Below, piece after piece: positions 1 through 23,647 of a stretch of 64,000 bases of DNA. The stretch is taken from assembly GCF_902459465.1 (NCBI RefSeq), contig NC_047066.1, positions 21,266,001 through 21,330,000 of the forward strand, in the 5' to 3' direction. Under the pieces are notes generated by a model. That model was given only the letters and a program-made list of their open reading frames with translations, was not told the DNA's origin and ran no database searches. The DNA comes from Asterias rubens (taxonomy: Eukaryota). Made by a program: the position numbers and the translations under genes. Position 1 is the first letter of the stretch; each line of letters starts with the position of its first letter.

Positions 1-2123
1 TTCTCGGGTTACCTCTACGTTGAGTAGCTCCCAAACCCCAACATTAGCGTAGGTGGAAGTTAAAGGTAGTCGTTCAGACTGTGTGAGATTAAGCTGATTG
101 GCACCGTAGGCCCATGATGTAAACCTGAATTCGCAGGACTGGGTATCGAATGGGAACATTCTGGCGTTGATTTTACAAGAGGTCTTCAGTGTAGACGGTG
201 AAGACCATTCCACGTGTCCACTATTTTGTACAATCAATGGGATGCCCTTGTAACTGTCAAACGGTTTGTCAACGCTGTAATTGTAGGCATAAAATAATGC
301 AATTTAGTATCAGTTTAACAAACATCTAACAAGTTAAATAATTTTGATTTAAAAGGTTTCTCTGTGCTGCGAAAAACTTTAACCACATGTTGGTAAGCAA
401 TTTGATCAAAATTTCGACTTACTTTTTGTAAAGAGTAGTATCTGGCAGCCATATTTTAGACTTGTCGACGTAAAGAACATCAATGCCGTTGTAATCATTT
501 GGATCCCAAGTTAAATACTCGTCCACCCATATCTGAAAATGTAGATAAAATCAACCGGATATAATTAATAAAAACGAACTAGTTTTTTTCAGTTGAACAG
601 AGCACTGATCAAAATTTCATGCTGATCGTTAAAATAGTCATCCGTTTTTACAACAGCCACCAGAACTCGAACAAGACTATTTTGTAATTACCTTGAATTA
701 CATTGCCACAAACGATTCTCCAAATATAACACCAAGATCAAATATTTAAGTTTTGACGGCCAACTTCACGAAAATAAATTAAGTTTCATTCAGTTTCATT
801 CAGTTTCATTCAAATGCAGGCATGCTTCCCTACATTCAAACTAGGGTTCCTTTGTAGTCACTTCCCGAGTGACAGGCGGGTACCCATTTCTCGTCTGGAT
901 AACTACCTTTAAGCATCACTTTAACCAGGAACAATGGATTCACCTGGTAAGTATGCTGCCACCAGGCTTCCTGAAAGTCCATTATTTCGTTTTCGTGCGC
1001 AAATATACAAGCTACATTTTCGCAATTCTCAAGTTGAATGTGTACAGCCAATTAATGACAGCGATGCAATTGAAAAGTTGACCAGCCTCTTGCTGTTTGT
1101 TTTTGCGAAATTATACGATAATATTATATTAAGTTACAAATAAAAAGGTAACTACTGGAATAAATCAATTTATTTGCCAATGACTAAATACTGATTGTTA
1201 AAGGTTCTAAAACTATAAAACTGTACCTGGCTTAACCAAACTCCCATTTCCAAGGTCTGATATCGCTCACTCTGTAAGGAAAAAGAAAAAGTATGGAATC
1301 AAATCACGAGTTTCATTAAGGATAAAACAGTGTAAGGTCCTTTAAAGTTATAATTAGAATGATTTAGTCGCCAGTGATTAAAACAAATCCACCAGAATTT
1401 GAAGTATTGGCCACACACCATAACAAGCTTTTGTTCTTCACACACAACACAGTAAAACACTATACTTTATAATCAGTTCAACAACAATATACCTAAAACT
1501 ACAATTATATCTAACATGAAAAATTTCCATTACAATCATTACCAATTCTATGACTTGGCGGATTACCAGACTAAATACCACTGTTGTTACATCCGATACG
1601 TTATATACGGGTCGGGTTGATTGGAAACCGTAGCCACCAAGTAGCTCCTTCAGAAGTACATTCTGGGCACTCATCTGACGACATTCTAAACGCAGAAAGC
1701 GGGTATAAATTGTCATTAAAAAACTATATTGCATACGAAAGATGTGTTATAGTCATTAGTACCAACCAGCAAAACATACCCTTACGTTTACCTGCCGCCC
1801 CTTTAACCAAGTAAAGAATATTACACTATAATGATGAAGTGAAAAGGCAACTTTACTACAGTCCAGGGAGAATGTTTTTTTTTTCTTTCATTCATGAACA
1901 ACTACAACAGCACTTTGCTGAAAACTTAAAAACAAATGTTCAATGACAAACAATGTCTGCACAAACAGAAAACAAAACCTCAAACAATTAAAAATGCATT
2001 AGCATGTTCTACAGATTTGTTTAAAAAAAAAGGTTTAAATTATCAGAAATAAAACTTACCACTCAAAGAGGAAGACGCTGAAACTAACAGGAGAGGCAGA
2101 ACAATCCACCGCATCATTGACAT
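1..2123 (-). CDS. nAChR-like Cys-loop channel subunit, paralog 1 (3' end off window)
   Basis: Exons 2060-2123 (signal peptide MSMMRWIVLPLLLVSASSSLS), 1543-1685, 1227-1271 (45 bp, SERYQTLEMGVWLSQ), 423-532 (110 bp, WDPNDYNG..IWLPDTTLYKN) and 1-274 (Cys loop CKINARMFPFDTQSC, loop B TSWAY). All GT-AG with consistent phases. Confidence 0.93.
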
Positions 2124-2264
2124 CAATTTCTGGTGGAGCAATCCCATGTCGTAAACGATACAAAGACAAAGCTTCTCCACAGATAATGTCAAACTAAAGA
2201 TTTATGGTAAGATTTTCCTGTAGATTTTTGTTCATTTACTTGGTCAGCATGTGACGTACGACCA

Positions 2265-2279
2265 TTGGGCGTGGCATGT
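2265..2279 (-). promoter_or_regulatory. Conserved Sp/KLF-type GC box (TTGGGCGTGGCATGT) upstream of paralog 1
   Basis: The same 15-mer occurs at 8674-8688 and 16006-16020, and the core GGGCGTGG at 23818-23825. Each lies 140-240 bp upstream of a paralog ATG. Confidence 0.6.
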
Positions 2280-3709
2280 CCTCTAGAAAATCGCAAGTTT
2301 TTGTTTATATTATCGACCACTAATCGTTGTCTTTATCATTTAAGTCATCAGTAGATTCAGACTTTTATAGTTTTATATTGAACAGTTCTATCCGTCTGAC
2401 CATGTAAACTGTATCGTTTTGGAGCCTGTTGACCAATCAGAAGGCGGCATTTATGGTCACGCGATACATAAGAGCGTATAATTTAGGAGGTAACTGTGCA
2501 TCCATGCGAGCTTTATACTGTTACATAACACTTCGTTGACCTCGGTTTGCTCATAGAGCAAGTTAAATCATTTTGGGGGATGCAGTAGTTCATATGGGAG
2601 GACTACAAACAGAGGAAATATTACTCGTGAGATATCACTATAGTACAGATATAGTATAGTCAACTACGGCGTAGAATAGATAATAAAACAAAAGACACAA
2701 AATCGACAGATGAAGACGACCAACGAAACAATCTTGTAGGATTTTGGGACTTACAGTAACGAACTTTATCGGAAATCAACAAGGTGCAGATAATAATTAT
2801 GATGGTACTAACTCCAATGGTCACTCGAGCGATATTATTGTATGTAAATCTAAGATGTATATGTTGGTATGCTGGTATTCAATGCTACACTCAAATGGGC
2901 ATAATGGACATACATGTACTATAATAATTAGTAATACCAAATATAAACATTTGTATAGCGCTTTACACAGGCGTACATTACAAAAATAAACATTATATAC
3001 ATCATAATAATAATACACTTGACACTTATGAGCATAGTGAAAGAAAACAATTGTCACTATGCACGAGAATCGGTTGATTGGCGTGATACTCGGAACGAGT
3101 GGTATCAACTACAAATACAGATCCAGGTGAAGGGTGATCGCACGCACAATTATGTGACGTCATAAGTCAACTAAGTGGTTAAAATGATCTCCAACTCGTC
3201 CAGACTGACAAGTGACATGCACCTCTTTATCCTCTGATTGGATGATAAACCCCAAATAATGGAGAAAACAGAGTGCGAGCTCATTATGTTTTTCATTTTG
3301 CACTATATGAAATGGGGGTTCATTTTAAGTGGGGTGTACCCACAACGGTCTTATATTAATGCGGAGTCCCTCACACTGTAATAAAGAAACAAAGAAACTG
3401 GCGGTTTTTTCACTCAACTCGGCTGTTGACTGATTTATCCAACTTGTATACTCATTGTTGGATATTTGTTGGATAACAAATACAATGCATATGGCAAACA
3501 CAATAATCATTCAATAAGGTTAGTTTATGGAATTTAAAAGCAACGTTTTATTGTTGTTAAGCATTACCCTTTATACAACTACAAATTGACATGTTTATTT
3601 CTCAATATATGAACTATTTGCTCACTTTATTTTTAAACTTAAAACTTTTACAATCCATTATGTGATCTCATTGCTTGTATGATCCCCCCCAAAAAAATAA
3701 AAATCTAAC

Positions 3710-3878
3710 AGCAGTCACGGGTTCTCCGTTACAGAAGGCCAGTCCTTCTCTGGAGTTCACCCCATTCATACTGTGCTGTCTTTTATGTATGATACATTTT
3801 AAATCGACCATTGTTCATTGTTTATCTGTTTGTATGATGGTATGAATGGAAATCAAATAAACAAACAAACAAACAAAA
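3710..3878 (+). mobile_element. Probable LINE/SINE 3' end with (AAAC)n tail
   Basis: GC-richer block ending in aaataaacaaacaaacaaacaaa. Family not identified. Confidence 0.35.
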
Positions 3879-4584
3879 ATGCAAAATTGCTACGTATGTC
3901 TTCATCAGAGGTCATCGGACTCTTCAATGATTTGGTTAGAGAATGAATCCCTAATGGTAACCCATTAGGGCAATGGTATAATGCATAGAGACGCAACGGA
4001 AACGTTCGCTTTGCTTCCCGTAATTATTAATTAAAGAGTGTATTCAATAAAAGCTTTTGTAGTTAACAATCAGTGGTGTTTGCACAAACGGGTTATGAAC
4101 ACTCGGGTATGCCATATCTTTTCGGAATCGTGAGTACAAATTACTCTGAATTGTTTGAGGAAAAGATATAGAGCCCCGGTCGTCATATACTATCGACCTA
4201 TCATCAGGTGGACGTTTCTAATTTATAAATAGGCGCAGCCAGTCTTGAGTTTATTATTATACATAGATTATCGCTAATGTATTAACGAATGACCCAAGTT
4301 TACTTCTACTTTCATATTTTATCATAATATACTTTAAAGTACAATACAAGAGAGCATTTAATCTAAACTTGAGTTAACGCAAACACAAACACACAGAATC
4401 CACAGCTAACTGTTGTAACACGTGCATGGAAAGCGATTTTTTTTTCGAAAAAAAAATCAAACTTATATAAACATTGAATATCAATGACTTGACAAACTTT
4501 ACACTGATGTTTAAACATCATTCAAGTTTTAACATAGTTTTAAATGAGAAGGAGATCACATTATTGTTGTCTTATCACATGGTG

Positions 4585-7500
4585 TTAATCAACCTTGTTT
4601 AGATTCAGAAAATAGCATAAAATAGTTACACAAAATGATGTCAGTGTAACCAGAGTGCTGATGAGTAAGGCTGCACGGTCAATCACCAAGGCAACATCCC
4701 GCCACACCGGACCATTGAAGGCTCGATCATCACTAGCCTGGTGCCCTTCTCGTGCCGATCGGTGACCTTTGATTTCAGCGTGACGCTTTGCTCTTCCGAC
4801 GGGGGAGCTGATGGTTTTTGACCGGTTGGTCGATGCATATTCTCGCTTCTGAGCAATCTGAAGAGTGTCGGGGTGAATATTATGGTTCTCTACCCAGTCA
4901 TCCACCCGGTAAAGATGAATATCTGACGGGAGAAAGTCAGAGTGGGTACTGGTCTCGAGCCCGGAGTCCAGACTGCCATTATTTCGGCAATTTTCACCTG
5001 CTGGTTCGGCATCGAGAGTTCCTTCGGGAGTTGGGTATTTTACTAACTTACCTAGAACTCTGAATGTGAGGTACTTTATCGAGCGAGGTATGGGACGCCG
5101 GTTGTCCCGAAAGTAAATGTTGAGGACGACTACGGTGATGATGATGGAGAAACATGACAGGATGATCATGGACGTGAAGTAAAAACCTATGTGGGGAAAA
5201 TGGACATAATAACTTTCCCTCAGTAAAAATCATTTCAGATTTGAATGTTGAAATTACAGGTTACTTTTATGTAACTGTTACTTCCCATAATTAAAAGATA
5301 TATTTACCAATTATTGGAGTGTTTTCTGATGCTGGAGGCAAAAATGTTCCAATCTGCTGCTGAAAGAGAACCAACGACAACAGGTTGGTCATACCCAGTG
5401 ATATCTTCTCCCCTGATTCCGGGGGCAACACAAACACCATGAGATTTAGAAGAGAGAGCAGAACACACGGGAGGACAATCTGGAGCAAGAAGAAGAGAGG
5501 TCGTCTTTGCAGATGAATAAAGTAAGATAGCTCAGTGTAGACTACAGATCCTTCATAGGACTTGGATCCTCGAAGATTCACTACTTTGAGTAGCTCCCAG
5601 ACCCCAACATCAGAGTACTCAACAAGTTCTGCCTCTTCAGACTTAGTTAGATTAAGCTGATTGTCACCGTAGGCCCATGATGAAAACTTGAGCTGGCAGA
5701 CCTGGGTGTCGAAGGGGAACATACCGGCGTTGATACGGCATGCAGTCTTGAGTATGGCCGGCGTGGACCAAAATACACTTCCATCACTGTTCACAATCAC
5801 TGGGATGTCCTTGTAACTTTCAAAATTCGTGTCAACGCTGCAATATCAAATAAAAGCAATTCAGTGTCAGCTTATTAAACACTCTAACAATTGTTGTTCT
5901 TTTTTTAAGCTGCGATCTTGTAACCTTAAATAAACGGTGAATGTTGACTGGCTTACGTAGTTATTTACTACACTGCAAAAACTGGGGTGCTAAAATTAAT
6001 ATTATTATTATTATTTTTTTTTTTTTGTTTTTGTTTTTTTTTGGGGGGGGGGGGTTCACAGAAAGATACCCATGACATGATAAAAAATAACACCAACGTA
6101 AATGTTTGCAGAAATTAGAATTATTGTGAACATGTACATTTAGATTATTTTCTTTCAATATCTACGTGTATCAACACCTATGAAATTTTTAACGCAATAG
6201 TTTCAGCAGTATAAATTTCAATCAAAACATGCAGTATCTTTTGTAACGTTTAACTTGAATTACATGGCGACGCCTCAGGTTCGCAATTTTATCAAACTTC
6301 GAACATAATTTGATCAACTTACTTTTTGTATAGAGTAGTATCCGGTAGCCATATTTTAGACTTTTCGATGTAAAGATGGTCAACGCCGTTGTAATCTTTT
6401 GGATCCCAAGTTAAGTACTCGTCCAGCCATTGCTGGAAAAAGTAGCATGAATTGGTCATTATTAATTAAAAGATTAGTTGTACAGTTGAACAGAGATCTA
6501 ATCAGAAAGTCATGATAACTGATATCTCCTTTTACAGCCGCCACAACTTGAGCGAGAAGGATTATCTTCCTTGAATCACCCATTTAAAATTTGTAATCTT
6601 TAAACCAAGCTCGATTATTCAACATCAAATAACTGTTCCGTTAGTTGTCAAATTACAAAGAAATAAGTAATTTATCATACTTATTATCCTTGCCGATAAT
6701 TATATTATTGTTCACGAATTTAAAACTATAACACTGTACCTGGGTTAACCAAACTCCCACCTCTAACGTCTGATAACGCTCACTCTGTAAAGAACAACAA
6801 CACAAAATAATACATGTTTTAATCATGTTTCAATCAGCCATCATAAAGTCTTGTTTAATAGATGACAAAATTCTAAGTCACCGAAAGCGTCAAATGCTCG
6901 GACTGACTAATTACTATTGTCATGAACTGTTAACATAATCATCGTGATGAAAGCGAAATAAAGGTTAAATAATATCATCGCCACAAATATTTGACAAGCA
7001 ATCTTTGAAAGGAAAATTAAATTTGATCTATCGAAACCCTTAAAACTAATTGCGTTTATCCTTTTATAAAAATTAAATAAAAAAAGTCATCCACACAATT
7101 CCTGGTAGCCGTTAACGAGACGCACTTATCGCTCCTACGGGGATTATCGTTTCTGAACCTGAAATAATGAGTTATTGAATAACAATAGCGCAATTTAATA
7201 CCATGCAGGTCGTGAAAACAGCCACTGTTGGTTCCAATTTCCTGCCCTTTGTGTTGAACATGGAGGTTTGAGTTTTACATGGAAGTTAATTTTGTTGGCC
7301 CCGAGCCGCATGACGTGTCCTTGTTTTCCCCGTGTTACAATAATAACAATAATAATAACAATACCTTTTTACGGGTTGTATGTAGTCTTGAAATCAAGTT
7401 CAAGTTTAGATATGCAGTGTTTTAAATACATAATGTGGAGGGACAATCAGACCACTTGGTGCTTGACATGTGCTATTGGGTCCATGTTTTGGGTCCATGT

Positions 7501-8437
7501 ATTGCGTCTTCAACTCAGAAATCTTTATAGGCCTTTAGAGGAAAACAATTACGGGTACAAGAAATAAAGTGTGTAGCTTGCTAAAATTTTGTGATGCCCT
7601 GTGCCCATAGCGGGGTTTGTATAATATTCGGAAAAGCATTTACCAATTCAATGACTTGGATGAGTGTCAGACCAAATACCACCGTTGTAACATGTGATAA
7701 GTTATAAACAGGTCGGGTTGATTGGAAACCGTAACCATCGAGTAGCTCTTTCAGAAGTACATTCTGGGCACTCATCTGACGACATTCTTTAAAATAAAAA
7801 CATTGAGGGGAAAACATACAGTAATTCCATTTTATTATCATGGTTTATAAATAAAAGGTAAGGTAAGATAAGGGTCATTTTTACTATAGCAATCATAATC
7901 GGGTTGTATTCGTTAAAAATACATCAAAGGTTACACACAAAACACCAAGGGTAGTTGTACTTTTCATTGACAAATATGTATACTGCAGACGTCAGACGCA
8001 TAATCAAACCAGCTAAAATAACCTTAAGTCTACATGCCATCTCCCTCTTCCCAGAAAACAATATTTAGTAATAGATCCCATTCTTGGCGAGTATGACCCG
8101 GAATCAAGCATATTATGCCTACTTGTATATCTACCGGAAGAAAACCCCTTTTGTTTTACTTTGCCAGGAATAAAACGAAATAGAATTCAAAACAATCACA
8201 GTATTTTTTATACTAAAAGATTAAGAGTTAATAATTGAAGGACAAACAATTATAAATAATTTAAAAAATGTATATACACAAACAGAAAAAAACATACAGC
8301 CATTAATATCCATCCACATGGACTTAAGATTTAGGCCTATATAGGCATGTGTTTAAATCATGATATAAAGTCTTACCACTCAAAGACGGAGACGCTGTAA
8401 TCAACAGGAGAGGCAGAACAATCCACTGCATCATCAT
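4585..8437 (-). CDS. nAChR-like Cys-loop channel subunit, paralog 2 (complete, ~496 aa, non-alpha type)
   Basis: Exons 8377-8437, 7644-7786, 6740-6784, 6323-6432, 5308-5837, 4585-5186 sum to 1491 nt with an open frame. Cys loop CRINAGMFPFDTQVC; M1 then M2 PPESGEKISLGMTNLLSLVLFQQQ; M3; M4 after WRDVALVIDR. No vicinal CC in loop C. Confidence 0.95.
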
Positions 8438-10318
8438 TGCCACTTTTCTGGAGCAAATCCCTTGTCTTAAACGAATCAAAGGCAAAGCTTCTCCACAGAT
8501 AACTTCAAATTAAAGAATGACTGTCGGTATTTTCCTGAAGCTTGCGATGGGTCGAAAACGCATTGTACTACACACGTATATGAGTACACCTTTACGCTCC
8601 TTTCCATTAAAAATCGCCAGCCAACCGTGAGTAGAATAAATACTCGTTCGATTAATAAGATGACGTTTTACTCTTGGGCGTGGCATGTTGTCAAGGTAAC
8701 AGTTAACGTTTGTTATTATAGACCATTAATTCCATTCGTGATTAAACAATGACCAGAAGGACCTTCCATGTACCATGATGGTATTTATGTTGCTTGAACA
8801 GAGTACAGTTATTATTACCTAAGTTTTATCGATGCATGATTTCATTGAGTTGATGTTATAACTTTGGCATGTTCAAAGTTATGCGTATACGTTACGTACT
8901 TAATAGGTATGTTTACTTTAAACATTGGAAATGGTCCTCGAAAGCAACAACCAACGAGCAAAGATTTGTTTTGTCCTCTAGCTCTTCATGCTAGTCTGAA
9001 ATGAGAGCCGTGTAAAGAATTTACCAATGTGCCCAATCCCCGGATAGGCTCTTTATGAATTCGAGCCCTCTTGTGTCGGTTATCACTTTAAAAAGTTTTA
9101 AGGCAAGGTGCATCTCAGTTCCTATATTATAGAACAGTAGTTTCGTTATATGGGCTCATCAGCTAACTGATTCTTCCTAAGTTTTCGCAATTTAATTCAC
9201 GAATCATGATTCTTTTAAATTTCATTCAGTCAGACTAATAATTATTTAAAATTTGAAACATACATCATATTACATGTAGGCTACACGGTACATATGTCTG
9301 CTTTATTCACACAAACTTAGCGCTTTACCTAACAAGTGTTTCAGCGAGCAAGTTAGTCCATGGGGTTTCATGAACAGTTGTTTATTTTCCATCATTTATA
9401 GCAATACGTTTACAAGAAGGCCAAAACCAAGTTTCCACAATATATACATACGCAATAAATACTATTTAGTAATTAATAGTAGTATTTAACTTTTGTTTTG
9501 CCTATTTCTACTTCATTGGTTTTCCTGGTTGTCTTTCGTGTAGTTTTGTCCTTTGTCATATTATTTCACCAGCCGTTTTTTATTTTAACATTTTTATTGT
9601 GGTCCTTTTTGCGTTAATGTTTTTGTTCGATATCTTTTGTCGTGTGATATTTTCTGTGAACTGTAATTTATAATAATATCTTTTCTGTGAACTATTATAG
9701 TTCTCGGTTGTCGGACTAATTTGCCAAGTTTGGAAAACCATATTGATGCAATCAAACTGTTGACTGTATTCCCTAGGGGTTGTTTTATAATGGAAAAGCA
9801 AATGGAAACGCTCTGCATTGCTTTGCTAGTTGCTACTTAAAGAATTTGTTCGGTTAAATAAAGTGCAATTTAAAAATAATGGTGTCTGCAGAGACACACA
9901 CTCCAATATATAATCCATATCTACATACAAATTATGCTAAAATGTTTGAGCAAAAAGTAGCTCTATTATCCACTATCAGTTGGATATTTCTACATAGATA
10001 AAGCCAGGCTTGTAATAATTATTTATGTATACGATTAATATTATTAATCTATATTTACTGCGTATTTTTGTTAATGTTTTATTAATTATGATACTTCAAA
10101 GTACCTGTGAGATACAATCCAAAATAGCAATAGAGTTGAGTTAATGCTCGCATACACAACTTTTACAGCTTTACTATAAACTTATCCTTATTTTTCGAAG
10201 AAATTTCAAATTTTGTACACAATCATATCGAATGACAGCTTTGACCACATTTTTACATAAACATCGGTCCAATTTCAGCATTTCTTTAGGAAGGAGATCA
10301 CACTATGGTCAAATTGCG

Positions 10319-13300
10319 TTAATTCAAATTGAGAACATAACATGTGGTAGTTACACAAAATGATGTCAGTGTAACCACGGTGCTGATGAGTAAGGCTGTA
10401 CGGTCAATCACCAGGGCAACATCCCGCCATACCGGACCCTTGAAGGCTCGATCATCACTAGTCTGGTGCCCTTCCCGTGCCGATCGGTGGTCTTTGATTT
10501 CAGCGTGACGCTTCGCTCTTCCGACGGGGGAGCTGATGGTTTTTGACCGGTTGGTTGATGCATATTCTCGCCTCTGAGCAATCTGAAGAGTCTCGGAGTG
10601 AATTATGCGGTTGTCCATCCAGTCATCCAGTACCCGGCAAAGATGAGTATCTGAGGGCGGCATGCCAGAGTGGTTACTTGTCTCGAGCCCGGAGTCCAGA
10701 CTGCCATTATTTTGGTAATTTTCACCTGCTGGATCTGCTTCGAGAGTTTCTTCGGGAGCTGGGTATCTTACTAACTTACCGAGAACTCTGAATGTGAGGC
10801 ACTTTATCGAGCGAGGTATGGGACGCCGGTTGTCCCGAAAGTAAATGTTGAGGACGACTACGGTGATGATGATGGAGAAACATGACAGGGCGATCATGCA
10901 CGTGAAGAAATACCCTATTGGGAAAAAATAGAAACAGTAACATTTACTAAAACATGAAATATCATATTGGATTAGTTTTTTTATACACGAGTGTCTTGTA
11001 AAGAGAAAGAATGTGTTCATTTTCTTCAAAGGAACGTCAAAAACGGTTTTCCTTTACAAAAACTGTTTAGATTTGTATGACATTTATTTGGCAGGTAGAA
11101 ACTTACGTAACTTTTAGTCATATAAAGGGTCATAGACTGGTAACTCCAAAATTATGGCTATGACTTTACACAATGGGTGAGGATCACTTTAGCTGTTCAA
11201 AGTATAGATCTTGAGAGAGGAATCCCTTCAAAGTAATATGGTTTGATACATTAAAAAAAAAAAAAAAAAAGGGCTTTGAAGGATCATTGAAAAGAAAGCT
11301 CAACGTTATTATTTGTGATTTGATTGAATAAAGTCATCACCAGTTGTTGAAGAAGCTTCGAGGTTACTTGAAGAAAGCACAACATCGAGATTGCTATCTT
11401 CTCTTTCTCTCTCTTTGGCAAATATGGTGGCCGTTTGTGGCTGGGTATTTTATCAGCGTTTAGACACTGTTTTCAGCTGAAACTTTAACATGTGACGTTA
11501 ACTGCATAATTATGTCTTCGAAAATTGTGCGCTATAAAAATTCAGAATTACATTGACAAACAAATCTATTACACCTTTAAACTTAACTATGAAATTTGTT
11601 AAATATTTACCAATTATTGGAGTGTTTTCTGATGTTGGAGGAAACAATGTCCCAATTAGCTGCTGAAAGAGAACCAGTGACAACAGGTTGGTCATACCCA
11701 GTGATATCTTCTCCCCTGATTCCGGGGGCAAGATAAACACCATGAGATTCAGAAAAGAGAGCAGAACACACGGGAGGAAAATCTGGAGTAAGAAGAAGAG
11801 AGGTCGTCTTCTCAGATGAATAAAGTAAGATAGCTCTGGGTAGGCAACCGGTCCGTCATACGACTTTAATTCATGCTGAATCTCTATTTTGAGTAGTTCC
11901 CAAACCCCAACATCAGAGTAGTCGGCCTTTGGATCATTCAATCTATCAGACTGTGTGAGATTGAGCTGGTGATTGCCATAAGCCCATGATGTAAACTTGA
12001 GCTGGCAGACCTGGGTATCGAATGGGAACATACTGGCGTTGATACGGCATGTAGTCTTGAGTATGGCCGGCGTGGACCAATATACACTTCCATCACTGTT
12101 CACAACTACTGGGATGTCCTTGTAACTTTCAAAAAGTTTTTCAACGCTGCAACATAGAAACAAAATGCATTTCAGTTTCAGCGTATGATATCTTACAAAG
12201 TGTACACTGTTCCGACACACCTTACAAAGTGTCAACTGTTCCGACACACCTTACAAAGTGTCAACTGTTCCGACACACCTTACAAAGTGTCAACTGTTCC
12301 GACACACCTTACAAAGTGTCAACTGTTCCGACACACCTTACAAAGTGTCAACTGTTCCGACACACCTTACAAAGTGTAAACTGTTCCGACACACCTTACA
12401 AAATGTCAACTGTTCCGACACACCTTACAAAGTGTCGACTGTTCCGATACAGTAGTCGGAACAGCTTATGTTTTCGTCAAGATTTGTTTATTTTTTCTTC
12501 TTATTTCTTTCGCTCTGTCGAAAAACCCATAGGTTTTGTACACACATTTTTGTTAGTACTAAAAATCATACTTGGCTTGTTTAAGAGTCAGTTCATATTA
12601 AAGCTTAGGTCATGAAGTTTATATACACTTAGTTAAATTATAAGCTTTACCTCTTAAGTTATTTTGCATAGTAACAACGACACAAATTTGTTAATTAGCC
12701 AATCTTGATACCATCATATCTCCAATGTCTTTTTCTTCTCGTAGTCCTATTCCTTATGTTTCTGTTCGTATTCATGTATTTGTAGTTAAAGGGAAGGTTC
12801 ACGTTTGGTAATTACTCAAAACAAATATTAACTTAAAAACTGACTTGGTAACGAGCATTAGAGAGCTGTTGGTGGTATAAAACATTGTTGGAAACGACTC
12901 CCTCTGAAGTAACGTAGTTTTTGAGAAAGGGGTAATTTCTCACTCAAATAATAAAAGACTTCTAGCTAGAAGTCTTTTATTCTTATCTGAAAGCACACCA
13001 ATTCGTCCACGTGGTTGTTTTTTCTTTCATCATTTCCTCGCAACTTTGATGACCAATTGAGCCCAAATTTTCACAGGCTTGTTATTTTATGGTTATGATG
13101 GGATACATCAAGTGAGAACACTGGTCTTTGACAATTACCAAACGTGTACTTTCCCTTTAATCATAATTTTTAAACTGATGTATTATGTATATAAATGTTT
13201 ATGGGTGTGCGTGTATGTATGTGCGTGTATTTATATTACTTTATACCGTTTTTGAATACTTCTATCTCTATGGCTATTTTTATTTGTACAAATAGTAGTA

Positions 13301-15793
13301 ATTCAACAGATGGCTGTGATGACTGTTTATCAATAAACCAACAACTTACTTTTTGTGTACAGTAGTATCTGGAAGCCATATTTTAGACTTGTCGATGTAA
13401 AGATGGTCAACTCCGTTGTAATCATTTGGATCCCAAGTTAAATACTCGTCCGGCCATTGCTGGAAAAAAAAGTTGCTGCATAAATAAGTCATAAATGTTA
13501 CAACAAATTATTTGTATTGATCAGAGCAATGATCAAAATGTCTGTCATACTGAATGCTACAACAAGTCTGTCTTTTTACAGCCATTACAACTTAACAAGA
13601 TAGTTGATTTACCTTGACTTGTATATTTATCAAAAAGCAAATGTCCTATACAATCGTTTTAAAACCAATATCGAATTTGTAATATGGATTTTAGTCAAAC
13701 GTATTGAATTACTGTTAAAGTTAACGAGTAATAAGTGAATTACATCAGAGATTAATTTATCCTTTTTAATGGTTGAATCTTACATTTGTTTACGAGTTTG
13801 TAACTACATACCTGAGTTAACCAAACTCCCACCTCTATTGTCTGATATCGCTCACTCTGCAGTGTGAAGAAAAGACAAAATAATGCAATTGTTTTAGTCA
13901 TGTGTCAATCAGGCATCATGGACACTGGGTGGACATATTTTGTAGTTGTCAAAGACCAATAATCTCATTTGGTGTAATCTAACATATTATTTGCACACAA
14001 TAAAAAATCTGTGAAAATTGTTGACTCAGTTGGTCATCACAAGGTGTGTTTGCTTTCAGACGCATAATAAAAGGTTGCAGGCCTAATATGTTTTTAATAT
14101 TTTAGTGAAAAATGTTAGTGAAAAACTACGTTACTTCAGAAGGAACCGTTTCTCAAAATGTTTTATACTATCGCAGCTCTCCATTGCTCATTACCAAGTA
14201 AGTTTTTATGCTAACTTTTGTGTTGTGTAATTACCAATAATGTCCAGTGCCTTCAATCCTGACATGTTGTGGATAAAACTATGGAATCAATTGGACCGTT
14301 TGGTGCTCGACATGGCACATGGTACATTGGGTCCATCTTTTTGTGTCTAAACTGTGGCTTTTTTTGGAGGGGGGGGGGACTTCTGGGCAAGAGGAAAGTA
14401 GTTTGCTAAAATATGGGAACATCGGGGGATAACCTCTGTCCCATATCGTGCATGGTGTAATTCAGAAAAGCATTTACCAATTCAATGACTTGGATGAGTG
14501 TCAGACCAAATACCACCGTTGTAACATGTGATAAGTTATAAACAGGTCGGGTTGATTGGAAACCGTAACCATCGAGTAGCTCTTTCAGAAGTACATTCTG
14601 GGCACTCATCTGACGACATTCTATAAAATAAAGTAATAACATTTTATTATTCATGGTTGATTGATAACAAACAAAGTCATCGCATAGCAGCCATCTGCTG
14701 AATTACCAATTGCACAAATAAATAAGTAGAATTAATATTTATAAACGGCATAACATAATATGCACACACAAAAAATACACAAATATCAGAAACAAATACA
14801 AACAAAAGGACTATACGAAAGTACTAGGCCTACACCATGTATAAAAAACTAAAAATCTGTAAAGAAAAATTTATGTAGGCCTATACACAAGTACATACAC
14901 TCAAAACACCAAAATGATGTTCAACTACAACTGGGAAAACTGTAAATTCATGGCATTTTCATTTGACCATGGAATGAAAGGCACTATTAGTATTAGCATG
15001 TCTCTAGCTTGGTACGTACATTATGAGTAGTCAATAATGAGTTACAATTAATACTGAGCCATTAAATTCACCTCTTGTTTTAGGAATCCACTCGCGAAAT
15101 TCAGTTCAATTCGGCTTAGCAAATTTGAGGTAAAAGTGTTGGCGGCGTTGTTTCAGATCTTGCATTTTAAAAGCATGTATTAAGACAAGACCATTATGCT
15201 TTAGACTCAATTTCGCTAAGCAAAACCTATAGACTTTTTTCATACGTTCAAGTGCATTGGGTTATTTACAAAAGACATGGATGCCAGACAGGAACGGCAT
15301 ATTCTAACAGACAGTCGAATGAAACCCACATAAGTTCAAGTCGATTAAACACCAAAGGTGTTACCGTATAATAATAATTGAAACCTCACCATGCAACGCC
15401 TAAGAAAAAGAAAACGATGACGATATATAAAGCATGTGAAAATATAGCCACGATTTGTATTTTTCGATAAAAGACTAATACTTTAATTTAAAATTTCCAA
15501 CCGTCACACTCTAGACCGGAAAACTGTTCTTTATAATACTTTTTGCATTATTGAACAACTTACAGTAACCCTACTGAAGCCGAATAATTGAAGGGCAAAC
15601 AAACAATAATCTATTATTTAAAACAGGTCTGCACAAACAGAAACCAAAACACACACCATTAAATACCCGTCCACTTAGACGTAAGATTTAGGCCTAGGTC
15701 TATGTTTAAATGGTTTAAATCATGAAATAAAGTCTTACCGCTCAAAGACGAAGACGCTGAAATCAACAGGAGAGGCAGAACAATCCACCGCAT
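10319..15793 (-). CDS. nAChR-like Cys-loop channel subunit, paralog 3 (complete, ~494 aa, non-alpha type)
   Basis: Exons 15739-15793, 14478-14620, 13812-13856, 13350-13459, 11611-12146, 10319-10914 sum to 1485 nt, open. Cys loop CRINASMFPFDTQVC, GEK motif, four TM segments. Confidence 0.95.
12193..12464. repeat. 29-bp minisatellite, ~8.8 copies, in intron 4 of paralog 3
   Basis: Unit ttacaaagtgtcaactgttccgacacacc at 12193, 12222 ... 12425, closed by the inverted repeat ctgttccga..tcggaacag. Confidence 0.95.
12786..13160. mobile_element. TTAA-flanked MITE, family A (Kolobok-like non-autonomous), diverged copy
   Basis: TIRs ttaaagggaaggttcacgtttggtaatt / aattaccaaacgtgtactttccctttaa; body homologous to the other family A copies. 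Confidence 0.8.
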
Positions 15794-17340
15794 AATTGAT
15801 GTAATTTCTGGAGAATGCGCGTATCAAAAAATCCTCAACAGACGATGTCAATGTAAAAAATGACTGGAGATGAGATGGTCCCGTACAGTTTTGTACTAGG
15901 TCCAAAACGCAATATCACATGAAACATACCTTTCCATTAAAAATCCCATGTGAGCCGTGAGTCGAATATACTTGTTTATTTACTTAATTATGTGGCACAT
16001 GACCGTTGGGCGTGGCATGTTGGGGATAATCGCAAACGTGGTATAAATCGACCAGTCTCTCAGATCCGTTCGTGTTTATCTATTAGTCATTATGAAAATT
16101 TTGATGGTTTTATGTAATTGCTTAAACGGAGGACATACATTATTACATACATTAATTTTATCAACGCATGATGTCATGCTCTTAGCTTCGATCTGTTCCA
16201 AGTTATCCTTACTTTGGCGTACTAAGGTATATTTAAAACATTGGTAAAGGTCCCAAAAAGCAAAAACCGACGGGCCAAGATTTTTTGTTCGCTCTTCCTG
16301 CTGATCTGAACAAGAGCGGTAAAGATGTGTCCAATGTGTCGGTTCGGTGCCGACGTTGCACAATGTTTTGTGACGTCTGATGTAGACTTTGTCTCTAAGA
16401 TGTCAAACTTGGATGTCTTTTCAGAGCCAACGCTCCCACTTAAGAGATTTACACAACTGTTTTACCGGCAAGTTTACTATTTATTATATTTTCATCCTAT
16501 TTATTCACACCATGCAAAGTTTTAAACAATACGTAAGGCCTATGTCCAACTTCTTTTTAGTCACCTCAGATACAAATGTTCATGCATGGCTTCAAGAGTT
16601 GATTCTTGCAACAGAATTATGATTCCAATTCTCTACATGAACGTTGCGAAGTGCGCCCTCTACTATGGTACACGAACAGATTGCAATATGTAGTATACTA
16701 CTTTGCTTTATACACCTCGAAGAACGTCTATAAACTACAATTTATCCGAATATGGGTCTATCTGACAGAGAATACATTTGAATCATTTGGAATTAGGGTT
16801 ATCAGTGTCCAGTCCAACCTGACCCATTGGTCGGTCGGGCCCATTGTCGCCCTGAACCCGTTTCAACTCTGTTGTGGGTTTATTCATATATTATACAACA
16901 TTTTGGGTAAAACTACACGATATTGACAATAAAAAAATATAAAAAATATAACAATTCTATTTTTCGAAATAAAACATTACGGCAACCATCATAACCAGGT
17001 AAACTCCTACGACTATCAATGGAACGTGCTTTATTTTCACAGATACACATACATCAGTCAATATACCAGCTCCCCGAAGGCAACGCTTATGAGCAAATTA
17101 TATAGTTTTCGCTCTTCCTGCTGATCTGCTTGAGAGCGGTTCAAAGATTATTGTCCAATGTGTCGGTTCGGTGCCACCATTGTCTTGTGACGTCTGATAA
17201 TAGAATTGGTCTCTAAGACAGCCAACGTTGCAAAGCGCGCCCTCTACGAAAAATAAGTGCAACGAGTTAAGAATACTTTTGCTTTACGCCTCGATGAACG
17301 ACTATAACTTCATCTTTATTATTATATTCCCTGTTTGTTT

Positions 17341-17460
17341 ACTATACACACCGATGTGCTTTAGTACTGTATACTCAGTACTTCCCCGAGCTCTAAACAG
17401 CACAGGCATAATATTACTCGGGTGGGATTCGAACCAACGACATTTGCAACTCTAGAGCAG
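17341..17460 (-). mobile_element. tRNA-derived SINE fragment (same family as 25061 and 60399-60743)
   Basis: B-box GGTTCGAATCCC on the - strand plus the shared body gtactgagtatacagt. Confidence 0.75.
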
Positions 17461-18579
17461 CTTCAACTTTATAAATACCCCAATTCACACATGCTCAGTG
17501 GCCTTAGAGGATCACTCTGGCGGCGTTTGACCCAAGATTGGCCCTGTGATTGGCAACGCTCTCGGCCACTTTTACATCTTCAAAAAGCGAAATGTTCCTT
17601 TTAGATTAACGTTTAGTTGCCTGTACATTATCCACTGACTTCCTGTAAATACACCTTCTGGAAAAGTAAGTAAAAGAAAATATACTTACTCGAATCCGAT
17701 TAATGTATCAGTAAACAGCCGAGCTAACCTGTGATTACGCTGGTGTTCGGTTCTCTTCTGGCAGTCATCATTTGCTGCGTAAGGTCAGATTTTGAGTAGG
17801 CCTTTATTGGAATTAAAATAGATGAAATGAAGATAATCTATGAAAAAGAGAATTGAAAGGCGTGTAGGTAACATAGGATATCAATCACCCAGCGAAAGAC
17901 TTCAAGTTCATGCCTTCATGTAGGAAGAAGGATGAGATGAACATGTGCAAAAACATGATAGCATCGGCCGTGAGATTTTAATTGAAATTTGTAATGTAGG
18001 AAGTAATTGTATTTTTAGCTATATCTTTATTGTACAGATTGCGTATACAGTTTGTACATTTAAGGATTTTGAGGATAACTATTTTTGTCATGATGCGACT
18101 CTAATGCTTCAAATTCCTGTGAATGTTTTTAATAATTTGCTACAAACTATTCTATTCTATAGTTACCATATTCTGACTGGTGAGGGGGTGTTTCCTGGGT
18201 ATTCTAAAACTAAAGTTTTCCTCGTAACCCAGTTAAAGGGGATGTAATTGACCTTGTACCCTATAAGATTCTAGTTTATAAGAGTGTAATTCCTGGAATT
18301 AGACCGCGAATTTAAAACGGAACAAAGACAAAGATCACACTCGTTTGTTCGGCATTAATTTTTTATAAGCATATTATGGATACATTAAGACACAGTGAAA
18401 AATAAACATTGGTACGTTACTATTCAATGCCTCAAATCCCATACAACAATTCTACAGTCTGAATGTTTATTACAATACAAAGGATTTGTTACAACAATTA
18501 AAACTTGTGACGAAGATGCTATTGTTTACAAACTCCGGTTGCAAATCAAACCTGAATTCAAGCTTACGCATTTACACGA

Positions 18580-18966
18580 TTAAAGGCAGTGGACACTATT
18601 GGTAATTACTCAAAATAATTATTAGCATAAAACCTTACTTGGTAACAAGTAATGGGGAGAGGTTGGTAGTATAAAACATTGTGAGAAACGGCTCCCTCTG
18701 AAGTGGAGTAGTTTTCGAGAAAGAAGTAATTTTCAACGAATTTGATTTCGAGACCTCAAGTTTAGAATTTGAGGGCCCGAAATCAAGCATCTGAAAGCAC
18801 ACAACTTCGTGTGACAAGGGTGTTTTTTTCTTTCATAGTTATCTCGCAACTCCGACGACCAATCAAGCTCAAATTTTCACAGGTTTTTAATTTTATGCAT
18901 ATGTTGAGATACACCAAGTGAGAAGACTGGTCTTTGACAATTACCAATAGTGCCCACTGGTTTTAA
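18580..18966. mobile_element. TTAA-flanked MITE, family A
   Basis: TIRs ttaaaggcagtggacactattggtaatt / aattaccaatagtgcccactggttttaa. Confidence 0.88.
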
Positions 18967-19441
18967 ATTGAAGGTATAAGTTTGGTATTCGCTGCTTAAA
19001 TTAATGGCAACAAAAGCATTTGGCTAGAAGCCTACAGCAGCTTGTGATGGTAGTCGAGCATTTTGAGAAACAATTCACTTCGAATACATCAGAAAGCCGA
19101 CCCCTTATGAACCGAACGATTGCCATTAGCCAGAGAAGCAGAAGCTTTTCCACATTAATATTTATATTTATATCATGTGGAATCTGGGACAACTCCAATG
19201 TTGACGTTGAATTAACAGCCGGTTGGATTGGTCCGTATCAACGTCATACTGCTGTATGGTTCATGCTTACACGATCAAATTCTTAGAATTTTTTCATTAT
19301 CATAATCTAGCTTTGCTTTTTCTAAAGGTTAATTTAAGGGGCTTTTCTTATTTTGTTCAACCCTTTCTGCTTTTTTTTCTTTTTCTTTTTTTCTAAATTG
19401 AATGAACATTAATAAGGCTTTCATTCTAAGAATAATATTTC

Positions 19442-22400
19442 CTACGAAATTAACAAAAACAGTGACACAGATACAGTAGCTGCCATAAAAGTCACGAGTG
19501 AAGATAAGACAAGGGCAGCCCGGTCAATCACGAGTGCTACATCCTTCCAGTTAAGAGCTCCGTTGGTCTTGTGGTGCGATTCCGCAGTTCCATCGGCTCC
19601 AGCTTGGGTAGACTGGATGAAAGAGATACCAATGCCAATGTCGTCCTTCGGGTTGCTGATATCGTTTTTAGCACCCACTTGACTGGAACCTGGTTCAAAC
19701 ATCGCGTTAATACCTTGCTCCTTCGTATCTGTGCTCACTTTGAATTTCCCAGCCGGATCGTGTTTTGAATAGGTCAGATCTTGTCTGCATCTTCGAATAG
19801 TCGTGGATGATCCTTTTGAAGCTTTGTAGCGGACCAACTTTGCCATGTGTTTGAGCACTACGATTTTGACCCATCGTGGTATGGCCTGCCGATTGTCGCG
19901 ATGAAACAAGTTCAGAACGATCACGGTACATACGATGGAGGTACTAGCAAGGACTATCATCGGGCAGAAGAAATATCCTGCGATACAAGACAAAAGAAAA
20001 TCAAATTAAGTTATTGAAATTGAGTGAAATTCAGTCACAAATGTACACCGAAACTGTCTTACAATTCCAGATGAACATGATTGAAAGCTTCAAGCTCCCC
20101 GATTATCATTTTTGAAGATTGAAGTCTGAGTTTAATCATTAACCCTGCTATAGCCCCACATACCGGTACACCTTGAATGCATAATCTGGACCCGCACAAT
20201 ACAACAATGATACAAGTATCAATTTGCCCAAGTCTGACATGACATAAGTGGTAATATGACAGCTACCGTAACTATTACAAATGTGGAAGGCATTAGTCTT
20301 TTTGAGGTATGGTGGACATTATAGAAGTACAATGTTTGGTTTTGGTGTTTACAGACAAATTTACCCAAACCAAATAATGTCATAGTGTTGTTCCACCAAA
20401 CCTCAAAATTTCCTTTCTTACCGACCAAAGAAAATGACTCACCAATGATAGGTGCATTATCTGAAGTCGGGGGAACAGCGTTGCTGATCAGCTGCTGGAA
20501 CAGAACCAGTGACAACAGGTTGGCCATACCCAGTGATACTTTCTCCCCTGACTCGGGGGGCAAGACAAACACCATCAGGTTGATTAGAGAGAGCAGGATA
20601 CATGGAATGATGATTTGGACAGTGTAGAACATGGGTCTCCGTCTTAGATAAACGGTATAAGTCAGTTCTTGGTAGGGAACGCCATCGTAAACAGACTCGC
20701 TTCCGTTCACAATGACGTCACGAAGCTCCCAGACCCCAACGTCTTCGTACAGATTTTTACTGTCCATCTCCTCCAATATCTGAAGATGTAACTCATAACT
20801 GTTGTACACCCATGATGAGAATTTTAGCTTACAGACTTGAGTGTCGAATGGGAAAAGTCGCGCGTCTATCTTGCAGGAGCTTTTTAGAATGACTTGGGCC
20901 TCCCATCTCATCATGCCATTGTAGTTAACGACGACTGAGGTATCTTTGTAGCTTTCAAAGTCTTTGTCCATACTACCAAAAAAAAACAGGATAGAATCAG
21001 AATCTTCAATATTATGTTGATATTGAAACTCAGTTTAAATGTTGTGCCATTTTTACGTTCATGAAGTTGTATTTTTGACTGTTTCGGGTGAAGCGGTTAT
21101 AAAGCTATGACCCCCGAGGTGATCCCCAGAGAGTCCTGCATAATGCCTCGGTGGTCGAAGCGGGAGTAGTAGCTTAAACAAGCGCAAGTAAAAACAGTCA
21201 ATATTTGTTTTACAACACGTCATAAGATACATTAACATAGACGTAGGTACAGAGAAGCTGATGTTGCTACAAGTAGGCCCAAAGTACATCGGTTACAACG
21301 GGAATAGTACATTGGTTACCACGGGTAAATTACACTGGTTGCTACAGGTACATCTGTTGCCACAGGCAGAACATTGGTTGCTTCGGGTAGCCTATAATAC
21401 AATGGTTGATACAGGTATAGTACGTCGGTTGCTATGGGTATAGTACATTGGTTGCTACAGGTATAGTACATTGGTTGCTTAGGGCAGCCTAATGGTTGCT
21501 ACGGGTATAGTACGTTGGTTGCTATGGGTGTAGTACATTGGTTGCTTAGGGCAGCCTATAATACAATGGTTGATACAGGTATATTACGTCGGTTGCTATG
21601 GGTATAGTACATTGGTTGCTACAGGTATAGTACATTGGTTGCTTAGGGCAGCCTATAGTACAATGGTTGCTACGGATTGGTTGATACAGGTATAGTACGT
21701 CGGTTGCTATGGGTATAGTACATTGGTTGCTACAGGATGAAATATCATGAAAGATTACCTTACCTGTTGTACAGCGTTATATCCGGCAACCATATTTTGG
21801 ATCTTGAAACAAAAAGTCGTTTTACTCCGTTGTTTTTGTCAGGATCCCAGGTCATAAACTCATCCGTCCATTGCTGAAATGAGAACGTAAAGAGAACAAA
21901 ATTATGCTGGTATTTTTTTTTTTTTTAATGATTCGTGAAAAATTTGATTATGGTTTGACAAAACCTTTATTACCAATAACGATCCGGGATATTGTTATTG
22001 GTACTCAATAACATTTTATTGAGATTACTTTTTGAAACATTTTTAACTGAAACAAAGTGCACATTAACATATTTCAACAATGCAAATTACATGCTTCAGG
22101 TACATTTATCTTGTGTATTCTGAACTTGACAAGCAAGAATATTCTGATCAAAAAAGAAGATTATTTTGTGGTATAACAGCTTCTTGGAAATCCTAGCACG
22201 TTGATTTGTAATGGGAGAACGTTAGGTTTATATAAAACCATATAAGGCCAACCCATCCCTACACATCACGCTCATCAACTTTCGGCCCTCCTTATGAAAT
22301 ATAAAAAATAAAATAAAAAACAATAACGAGAAACAAAACAACACTATGAACAGCTTTTCCTACCTGAGTGAACCAAGTTCCAATTTCAAGAGTTTGATGT

Positions 22401-23647
22401 TTTTCATTCTGTAACAGACAAACAAAAATAGTAAATTTTGATTTTAAAGCTGAAGTCATAGATTGTGTGTTCGAAACAAGCAGTTTTAAAAAGGCAGTGG
22501 ACACTATTGGTAATTACTCAAAATAATGATTAGCATAAAACCTTAATTAGTAACGAGTAATGGGGAGAGGTTGATACTATAAATGGGTGTGAGAATTGGC
22601 TCCCTCTGAAATTACGTAGTTTTCGAGAAAGAAGTAATTTTCAACAAATTTGATTTCGAGACCTTAGATTTAGAATTTGAGGTATCGAAATCAAGCATCT
22701 GAGAGAACACAACTTCGTGTGACCATGGTGCGACAAGGGTTTTTTTTTCTTTCATTAATATCTCGCAACTTCGACAACCGATTGAGCTCAACTTTTCACA
22801 GGTTCGTTATTTTATGCATATACCAACTGTGAAGACTAGTCTTTGACAATTACCAATAATGTCCAGTGTCTTCAAGTAATGTTTGAAGCTTTGCTAGGTG
22901 TAGACAACAATAAATAGTTCTAAACTTCAGTTATAACCGAGCTGTTACAGTCAAGATGTGAAATCTCAATTGAATGTGAAATGTTAAACAGTTCCTAAAT
23001 AATTTTCAAGTTATCTTCTAACATAAAAAGAAAACTGTTCTTACCAATTCTATAACTTGTGTAAGTAAAAACATAAACTCCACACGGATGACATCTGATG
23101 CATTTCTGACCGGTCGTAAAGTGGTGAACTCATAGCCATCAAGTAAACTCCTCAGTAAACGTTGGGTGCTCATTTGACCAAAACATTCTGCGAAGAAGAA
23201 ATTAAAACAGATTTTCCATTTAGCTTGGGTCGTATATAACGTACCGGCTTAGGAAACAGCTACATTTTTACAATTTATTTGTAAATCTTAAGGGGGAAAC
23301 CCAAGACATGCTAAACAGTTACATTTTCCCGTTACTGTTTTATTATAAAGGCTGATTTTTAGAAATGTTGTTCCACTTTGTCGTTGTTTACTGTTTCATT
23401 CCATTATAGATGTTAAATTTGCATCGGGGATAAAGAATTTTTTTTTTTTCATTCCAACTATACTAGGCCTCCACTGCAATGTTTGAGCTGAAAAATGAAC
23501 CCATGTGACAATTTATGATAAATTTTAATTATCAAACAGCTGTTTGTATGTCCCATCTTTCTCCACTGTACCCTACTAAGTAAATCACATTGATGGTTAC
23601 TTACCGTGCATCAATGCTGCGGCTGTTAACAGGTGGATCAAATTCAT
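19442..23647 (-). CDS. nAChR-like Cys-loop channel subunit, paralog 4 (complete, ~468 aa, most divergent copy)
   Basis: Exons 23605-23647 (MNLIHLLTAAALMH), 23045-23187, 22364-22408 (NEKHQTLEIGTWFTQ), 21764-21873, 20443-20972, 19442-19977 sum to 1407 nt, open. Cys loop CKIDARLFPFDTQVC; M2 GEKVSLGMANLLSLVLFQQ; WKDVALVIDR before M4. Confidence 0.94.
21262..21736. repeat. Degenerate 23-bp minisatellite with higher-order structure in intron 4 of paralog 4
   Basis: Unit gtatagtacattggttgctacag, about 20 variant copies; ends about 27 bp from the exon 4 donor. Confidence 0.9.
22486..22875. mobile_element. TTAA-flanked MITE, family A (intron 2 of paralog 4)
   Basis: aaggcagtggacactattggtaattactc ... 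aattaccaataatgtccagtgtcttcaa; collinear with the 18580 copy. Confidence 0.85.

Follow-up and report, generated by a model that had tools for sequence, protein, structure and literature searches.

A starfish-only lineage of nicotinic receptor subunits without the loop-C cysteine pair, linked tail-to-tail to its alpha-type sister genes in Asterias

In this article, I describe four receptor genes that lie side by side in a 64,000-nucleotide stretch of the genome of the starfish Asterias rubens (NC_047066.1, positions 21,266,001 to 21,330,000 of the forward strand; hereafter the window, meaning this whole stretch), and argue that they are non-alpha members of the nicotinic acetylcholine receptor (nAChR) family. 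The four genes, called c1 to c4, occupy positions 1-23647 of the window and are the outer part of a nine-gene array in which a block of subunits without the vicinal cysteine pair (Cys-Cys) of loop C meets a block of alpha-type subunits that carry it. They belong to a clade found only in starfish, sister to the alpha-type genes beside which it lies in every starfish genus compared, and what emerges is the ordinary pattern of the family, namely a non-alpha lineage that arose from an alpha gene, was kept beside it and most likely fills complementary or structural positions in heteromers. A sensory role, which a sequence-only reading of the same DNA had put forward, is on the present analysis a possibility rather than a finding, and the array is better regarded as a well-defined candidate set for starfish cholinergic physiology than as a demonstrated new system.

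When the large exons were used as tblastn and tblastx queries across the window, exactly four nAChR-family copies were recovered within 1-23647, all on the minus strand, and no further copy was detected at E<1e-3 between 24 and 64 kb; the sole match beyond c4, at 27054-27377, was non-significant (E 0.07 or worse) and was rejected as a fifth copy. Comparison of copy against copy by tblastx yielded five conserved exons in each, from which the gene models were assembled by hand, and a sixth exon encoding the signal peptide was located in every copy by searching for an ATG, a hydrophobic stretch and a phase-1 GT donor. Each copy consists of six exons separated by GT-AG introns, with exon sizes of 55 (43 in c4), 143, 45, 110, 530-536 and 536-602 nt. 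Three copies are complete inside the window and encode uninterrupted proteins (c2 and c3, 494 amino acids each; c4, 468), while c1 is truncated at window base 1 within exon 5 and is intact on the chromosome, where the remainder (L001) completes a 488-residue open reading frame (ORF) ending at L001:8350, which is also the annotated end of the gene. The earlier suggestion of at least four intact, same-strand paralogs sharing a six-exon plan therefore holds, and since the hand-built models of c2-c4 are identical to RefSeq proteins, these genes were already annotated, although under automatic names only. The features are as follows.

1..2147, minus strand: c1, 5' part (exons 1-4 plus the opening 274 nt of exon 5); the gene runs off the window
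2114-2060, 1685-1543, 1271-1227, 532-423 and 274-1, minus strand: exons of c1; the annotated ATG is at 2147
177-133, minus strand: Cys loop of c1
4585..8434, minus strand: c2, complete, 6 exons, 494/495 amino acids; equals XP_033627796.1 ('beta-3-like') and is 100% identical within P0166
8431-8377, 7786-7644, 6784-6740, 6432-6323, 5837-5308 and 5186-4585, minus strand: exons of c2
5740-5696, minus strand: Cys loop of c2
5569-5528, minus strand: loop C of c2, GSKSYEGSVVYTEL
5425-5345, minus strand: M2 of c2
10319..15793, minus strand: c3, complete, 6 exons, 494 amino acids; equals XP_033627853.1 ('beta-3-like') and is identical to P0290
15793-15739, 14620-14478, 13856-13812, 13459-13350, 12146-11611 and 10914-10319, minus strand: exons of c3
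12049-12005, minus strand: Cys loop of c3
11872-11831, minus strand: loop C of c3, ELKSYDGPVAYPEL
11728-11648, minus strand: M2 of c3
19442..23647, minus strand: c4, complete, 6 exons, 468 amino acids; equals XP_033627797.1 ('alpha-7-like') and is identical to P0151
23647-23605, 23187-23045, 22408-22364, 21873-21764, 20972-20443 and 19977-19442, minus strand: exons of c4
20875-20831, minus strand: Cys loop of c4
20701-20663, minus strand: loop C of c4, SESVYDGVPYQEL
20560-20480, minus strand: M2 of c4

By the features predicted from their sequence, the window genes are standard cation-selective Cys-loop subunits of the nicotinic receptor family. The signal peptides, Cys loop and GEK motif that the sequence-only reading had pointed out are found in all four copies: the N-termini are hydrophobic and end in SLS/E, the Cys loop has the form C-x6-FPFD-x-Q-x-C (C-x13-C), and in the 27-sequence alignment that was used for all residue comparisons M2 carries PPESGEK, a Leu at 9' and QQ at 15'/16'. 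The Pfam domains Neur_chan_LBD and Neur_chan_memb are recovered above the curated cutoff from exons 5 and 6 of c2, c3 and c4. Among solved structures, the closest by sequence is human alpha7 (PDB phmmer, E 3e-37, 131 bits), followed by beta2 (120 bits), alpha3 and alpha4, and an identity as 5-HT3 receptors was rejected on account of the nAChR-type loop A (WLPDxTLYKN) and of alpha7 outscoring 5-HT3A (101 bits). The AlphaFold2 model of c3 (predicted local distance difference test score 79.8, and >90 across most of the ligand-binding and membrane domains) consists of a beta-sandwich and four helices, and its top 50 PDB folds are exclusively bona fide nAChR chains, with alpha4beta2, alpha7 and muscle nAChR as the best. 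When the 178-residue product of c3 exon 5 was compared with 1.84 billion representative sequences, the best full-length matches were all echinoderm nAChR-like proteins, and a second search started from the Acanthaster match led to the A. rubens proteins with which the models agree.

The defining departure from the alpha type lies at the tip of loop C, where the window genes do not have the vicinal Cys-Cys by which alpha subunits are recognized. In the alignment to human alpha7, YECCKEPYPD stands against SYDG-PVAYPEL, so that the cysteine pair is replaced by a Gly and a one-residue deletion, and this bears out the earlier observation that copies 2-4 have no such pair; loop C of c1, which lies outside the window on the chromosome, reads AYGE-SIAYPEL and is likewise without Cys-Cys. 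The pair is absent from c1-c4 and from three relatives introduced below (P0165, P0003 and P0164), it is present in P0170, P0171, P0281 and a 474-residue neighbor, and loop C of the whole Cys-Cys-less lineage is 1-2 residues shorter than that of alpha7, alpha9 and alpha10. A further difference from these subunits concerns the pore, since the 20' outer ring is uncharged (G/S/T/N) in the Cys-Cys-less genes as opposed to E or D in alpha7 and the neighboring alpha-type genes (E in alpha7/9/10). What is shared with alpha7, alpha9 and alpha10 is the FPFD Cys loop, the SGEK intermediate ring, the 9' Leu and the residues of the aromatic box (Y93, W149, Y188, Y195 and W55 in alpha7 numbering), which is largely kept: the loop D Trp, the loop B Trp and both loop C tyrosines are found in c1-c4, and the loop A Tyr in c1, c2 and c4, with His at this position in c3 and its orthologue in Asterias amurensis. 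These aromatic residues are also kept in the valvatid orthologues of the Cys-Cys-less genes, and both tyrosines of loop C are gone from P0165. The loss of Cys-Cys by itself defines a subunit as 'non-alpha', not as 'non-cholinergic'.

The window sees only the outer four members of an array of nine genes that extends over 75 kb of LR699096.1 (about 21.215-21.290 Mb; assembly GCA_902459465.3). Its plus-strand block is made up of P0281 (475 amino acids), the 474-residue gene, P0171 and P0170, all with Y-x-CC in loop C, and its minus-strand block of P0165, c1, c2, c3 and c4, all without it, with the two blocks tail-to-tail where they join. On the P0281 side the array is bordered by a CH/GAS2 gene, and on the other side c4, the most divergent copy, is followed by 10 kb without any called gene. 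The full-length models of the array share the six-exon plan (55-67, 143-149, 45, 110 and 530-542 nt, and a last exon of variable size). The models of P0165 (L001:10001-12866) and P0283 (L006) have five exons and begin inside the equivalent of exon 2, so that they probably lack the signal-peptide exon, and one A. amurensis model, P0282 (935 amino acids), joins two alpha-type genes in one. Similar, if smaller, arrangements exist in other starfish: a single gene of the Cys-Cys-less clade (clade B) lies tail-to-tail with a gene of the alpha-type clade (clade A) at a distance of 2.7 kb in Acanthaster planci and 8 kb in Patiria miniata, and in Patiria the 10 kb upstream of the clade-B gene hold no more exons from ion channels of the pentameric ligand-gated type (pLGICs). 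In all three starfish genera, then, the Cys-Cys-less clade is tail-to-tail with Cys-Cys alpha-type genes, and the simplest history is that of an ancestral convergent alpha/non-alpha pair which expanded on both sides to 4 + 5 genes in the Asterias lineage.

The descent of these genes was examined in trees of 63 sequences (quick search) and 30 sequences (careful search), built without 5-HT3 receptors, anionic receptors, beta3/alpha5 and the cephalopod chemotactile receptors. Clade B is supported at 100/99 and divides into Acanthaster P0003 plus Patiria P0164 on one side and all Asterias B genes on the other, the latter with the topology (c4, (P0165, (c1, c2, c3))). Clade A (P0170, P0171, P0281, Acanthaster P0169 and Patiria P0168) is its sister at 99/97, and with a single Cys-Cys-less clade next to a Cys-Cys clade, the cysteine pair was lost once, before the valvatid/forcipulatid split. 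Both clades consist of starfish sequences only and are nested inside an echinoderm clade, then in a hemichordate and echinoderm group, and finally within the large clade of alpha7, alpha9/alpha10 and ACR-16-like subunits, well apart from vertebrate beta2/beta4 and from the heteromeric subunits of insects and nematodes; several branches, with Shimodaira-Hasegawa-like approximate likelihood-ratio (SH-aLRT) values of 91-100, separate them from beta2/beta4 in these trees, where beta3/alpha5 had no place. It follows from this placement that the automatic RefSeq label 'beta-3-like' does not reflect descent, and both this name and 'alpha-7-like' are misleading. Thus the genes constitute a starfish-specific lineage with no one-to-one vertebrate orthologue, having become non-alpha separately from an alpha7/9/10-like ancestor with no beta descent in common with vertebrate beta2/beta4 (beta3 being outside the tree), and two proposals of the sequence-only reading agree with this result: that the genes are not one-to-one orthologues of vertebrate beta subunits, and that they represent a tandem expansion, which can now be specified as the Asterias-lineage growth of a starfish-only Cys-Cys-less clade to five genes. 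Cys-Cys is also missing from two Amphiura sequences (P0013/P0018), two crinoid sequences (P0023/P0186) and one Lytechinus sequence (P0221) of the same echinoderm clade, which points to a recurrent loss of the pair within the phylum, as judged from the aligned sequences. The literature searches yielded no paper devoted to the diversity of echinoderm nAChRs or to these genes, and no earlier account of this clade or of the alpha/non-alpha pairing conserved in it.

The array is also evolving unevenly. The orthologous region of A. amurensis contains intact orthologues of c4, c3, c2 and P0165, with splice sites conserved in c2-c4, and of c1 there is only part of the last exon (L004:22609-22901, CP134957.1; tblastn), located between the c2 and P0165 orthologues and 91% identical to c1 residues 424-488. 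Ratios of nonsynonymous to synonymous change (dN/dS), calculated by the Nei-Gojobori method between A. rubens and A. amurensis on rebuilt orthologous coding sequences, with contrasts assessed by Fisher tests, are 0.46 for c2, 0.23 for c3 and 0.28 for c4, and 0.125 for P0165 and 0.06 for the alpha-type P0170, and at the protein level the window genes change 2-8 times faster than their neighbors. Pooled nonsynonymous and synonymous changes amount to 82/76 in c2-c4 versus 20/64 in the two neighbors (Fisher p = 2e-5). Every copy has a whole-gene dN/dS <1; by region, where the values are rough owing to small counts (dS about 0.07-0.12), only the cytoplasmic loop of c4 is not <1, M1-M3 of c2 reaches 0.85 on very few changes, and the transmembrane core of c3 and c4 is nearly unchanged between the two species. 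Among c1-c3, loops C and F are about 50% identical, compared with 75-89% elsewhere in the ligand-binding domain (p = 2e-6, 0.003 and 0.005), a contrast that the alpha-type paralogs do not show. Between valvatid orthologues, 18 of 20 loop C positions are identical in the alpha-type genes and 8 of 19 in the Cys-Cys-less genes, and this conservation in the former against variation in the latter means that loop C was freed from constraint when the disulfide was lost. A freely varying loop C is expected of non-alpha subunits.

Three of the four copies are not silent. In the RNA contigs the exon 5/6 junction of c4 is present with intron 5 removed (run X8, record 24), as is c1 with intron 4 (275-422) removed (run X26, record 2) and c2 with intron 5 removed (run X26), in each case with 0 mismatches; these three copies yield properly spliced transcripts, and the word depth of the junction contigs is low (2-13).

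Starting from the gene structures, clade, synteny, rates and transcription observed here, I consider it roughly an even chance (probability about 0.5) that the clade-B subunits are complementary or structural partners of the adjacent alpha-type subunits in acetylcholine-gated channels, with both the co-assembly and the ligand being what I infer. On this account, a single tandem duplication of an alpha-type gene of the alpha7/9/10-like group gave rise to the Cys-Cys-less lineage at a time when the valvatids (Patiria, Acanthaster) and forcipulatids (Asterias) sampled here had not yet separated; the lineage then lost the loop-C disulfide, with a shortening of loop C by 1-2 residues, and has kept its tail-to-tail position beside the alpha-type sister to this day. 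One gene became five in the Asterias lineage through tandem duplication with birth-and-death turnover, the outer copies being under relaxed or diversifying evolution, and the subunits would co-assemble with the neighboring Cys-Cys subunits into acetylcholine-gated cation channels whose pharmacology, conductance or Ca2+ permeability the separate copies may tune. The conserved tail-to-tail linkage fits such an alpha/non-alpha partnership at least as well as it fits a sensory function, and the products of a conserved vertebrate nAChR cluster, CHRNA5-CHRNA3-CHRNB4, do co-assemble. As in non-alpha (beta-type) subunits, the starfish genes are without Cys-Cys, have a freely variable loop C and are kept beside alpha-type genes. 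The preserved loop D and loop B tryptophans and pore rings, the intactness of all copies, the spliced transcripts and a dN/dS below 1 in each copy also speak for this reading. The array offers a clean and datable case of a lineage of non-alpha nicotinic subunits arising from an alpha-type gene, in which the loss of the loop-C disulfide, the release of loop C from constraint, the neutralization of the outer pore ring and the subsequent multiplication beside the alpha-type sister can all be followed.

Several points weigh against this partnership. Co-assembly or co-expression with the alpha-type neighbors has to be inferred, and the conserved linkage may simply reflect a tandem origin. The principal-face aromatics (the loop A Tyr and both loop C tyrosines) are mostly kept, although a purely complementary subunit needs none of them, and a diversification of ligands would also fit the dN/dS range of 0.23-0.46, the absence of an intact c1 from A. 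amurensis and the divergence of loops C and F in c1-c3. In addition, the monophyly of the Asterias B genes, and with it a single Asterias-specific expansion, is only moderately supported (87/83), and the clade-B gene of A. planci is only 1.7 kb from the end of its scaffold, so that extra copies may exist there.

One alternative is that the Cys-Cys-less subunits form channels for environmental or non-acetylcholine ligands in external sensory tissue, in parallel to the cephalopod chemotactile receptors or to Alpo4 of Alvinella pompejana, and I regard it as unlikely although worth keeping in view. The chemotactile receptors (CRT1, CRB1) are nAChR-derived, Cys-Cys-less, expanded in a lineage-specific manner and without common ligand motifs (PMC10338036), and the starfish genes resemble them in the first three of these respects, with gene loss in A. 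amurensis, the elevated dN/dS relative to the array neighbors and the concentration of change in loops C and F all pointing in the same direction. However, there are only five such genes in Asterias, and one in Patiria and Acanthaster, dN/dS is <1 everywhere bar one cytoplasmic loop, variable loops C and F are found in many pLGIC families, and the clade is never seen apart from alpha-type partners. The canonical acetylcholine-binding motifs, whose loss marks the cephalopod type, are still present in c1, c2 and c4 (c3 has the His at loop A); most of the acetylcholine aromatic box survives in the starfish genes, unlike in the cephalopod receptors. The top 60 PDB sequence matches and the top 50 PDB folds include no chemotactile receptor, and the position of the starfish genes in a clade of echinoderms only, separate from the sampled mollusc sequences, suggests an origin independent of the cephalopod clade, in trees that contained no chemotactile receptor. 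Alpo4 is the closer precedent, with its key aromatics present, its vicinal disulfide absent and an overall likeness to alpha7, and neither acetylcholine nor serotonin elicits a response from it (PMC10338036); yet it is a phylogenetically isolated lophotrochozoan protein that was solved as a homopentamer, whereas the starfish genes are known from sequence and stand in a mixed alpha/non-alpha array. The parts of the independent sensory expansion that survive are the starfish-only tandem growth, the faster evolution, the loss of one copy in A. amurensis and the hot spots in loops C and F, while the retained aromatic box, the small family and the alpha-type linkage speak against the rest. A more specific version, namely a fast-evolving family of external ligand sensors in tube feet or terminal tentacles with loops C and F tuned to quaternary amines, saponin-like molecules or prey cues, strikes me as improbable; were it true, it would be a deuterostome parallel to the octopus receptors, just as any sensory or orphan-ligand function of the outer copies would extend the octopus chemotactile-receptor story to deuterostomes. 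Expression in the crown-of-thorns starfish bears on this to a limited degree: an 'alpha-9-like' nAChR model (gbr.90.120_122) belongs to the genes listed as up-regulated in the oral organs (tube feet, sensory tentacles and radial nerve; PMC9759900, Table S1.2) and lies two gene numbers from an 'alpha-10-like' model (gbr.90.118), but neither could be mapped to P0003/P0169, and since the organ set includes the radial nerve, sensory and neural expression are not separated in it.

The retained aromatics also invite the idea that the B subunits bind acetylcholine, choline or betaine themselves, at B/B or B/A interfaces and without a loop-C disulfide, as homomers or as heteromers of B subunits only. 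The residues concerned (loop A Tyr, loop B Trp, both loop C tyrosines and loop D Trp) are all in place in c1, c2, c4 and the valvatid orthologues, the alpha7/9/10-like ancestry is that of a homomer-forming group, and in Alpo4 the same aromatic residues hold the quaternary ammonium group of CHAPS (PMC10338036). Nevertheless this appears doubtful, given the His at loop A in c3 and its A. amurensis orthologue, the loss of both loop C tyrosines in P0165, a loop C that is short and highly variable, and the description of the loop-C vicinal disulfide as required for nAChR ligand binding (PMC10338036). Quite improbable, in turn, is the view that the copies are redundant young duplicates drifting toward loss with no distinct function, for which one could cite the highest dN/dS being in the outer copies (c2 above all, including its M1-M3 value on very few changes), the 3' remnant that is all of c1 in A. 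amurensis and the low depth of the RNA contigs; on the other side, both Asterias species have undamaged c2, c3 and c4 genes whose splice sites are conserved, all whole-gene dN/dS values lie well under 1, c3 and c4 have hardly changed in their transmembrane core, and c1, c2 and c4 yield properly spliced transcripts. Complementary or structural partnership with the alpha-type neighbors stays the reading I favor.

Some perspective is provided by the lophotrochozoans, in which tandem nAChR expansions and Cys-Cys-less orphans are well documented (PMC6896357, PMC10338036). Bivalve nAChR genes have expanded in tandem in a stepwise, lineage-specific manner, accompanied by gene loss, and their arrays reach 12 genes (Jiao et al. 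2019, PMC6896357), and the starfish array resembles them in its stepwise lineage-specific duplication with gene loss. The two differ in scale and in structure, the mollusc expansions comprising 99-217 genes that are largely intron-poor retrocopies (PMC6896357), as against the nine starfish genes with their ancestral six-exon structure kept.

A few minor observations from the window may be recorded here. On the minus strand, a Ly6/uPAR three-finger pattern (..ECWKCN.., ..CCKHGLCN) is seen in two ORFs within 49005-50004, at 49774-50004 and 49005-49247, some 25 kb away from the receptor array; a Lynx2-like protein of A. rubens, Lystar5, has been published as an nAChR modulator (PMC9410279), and the ORFs may or may not belong to one of the genes described there. 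The introns of the receptor genes are rich in repeats. The same element occurs in c4 intron 2 (22471-22923) and c3 intron 4 (12788-13173), as seen by tblastx, with a word depth in the millions in each of the four RNA runs compared, which implies a very high-copy interspersed repeat, and no tRNA-like gene was found inside it. In c3 intron 4, a 29-bp unit repeated nine times (12192-12451, 96% matches) ends 46 bp upstream of exon 5 and gives rise to long spurious ORFs on both strands, and c4 intron 4 contains a degenerate 23/46-bp minisatellite of about 17 copies (21283-21738) with high depth in the RNA runs. Finally, RNA contigs from runs X4 and X26 extend over roughly 1 kb (3528-4494) on the downstream side of the c2 stop codon and suggest either a long 3' untranslated region of c2 or an intergenic transcript.

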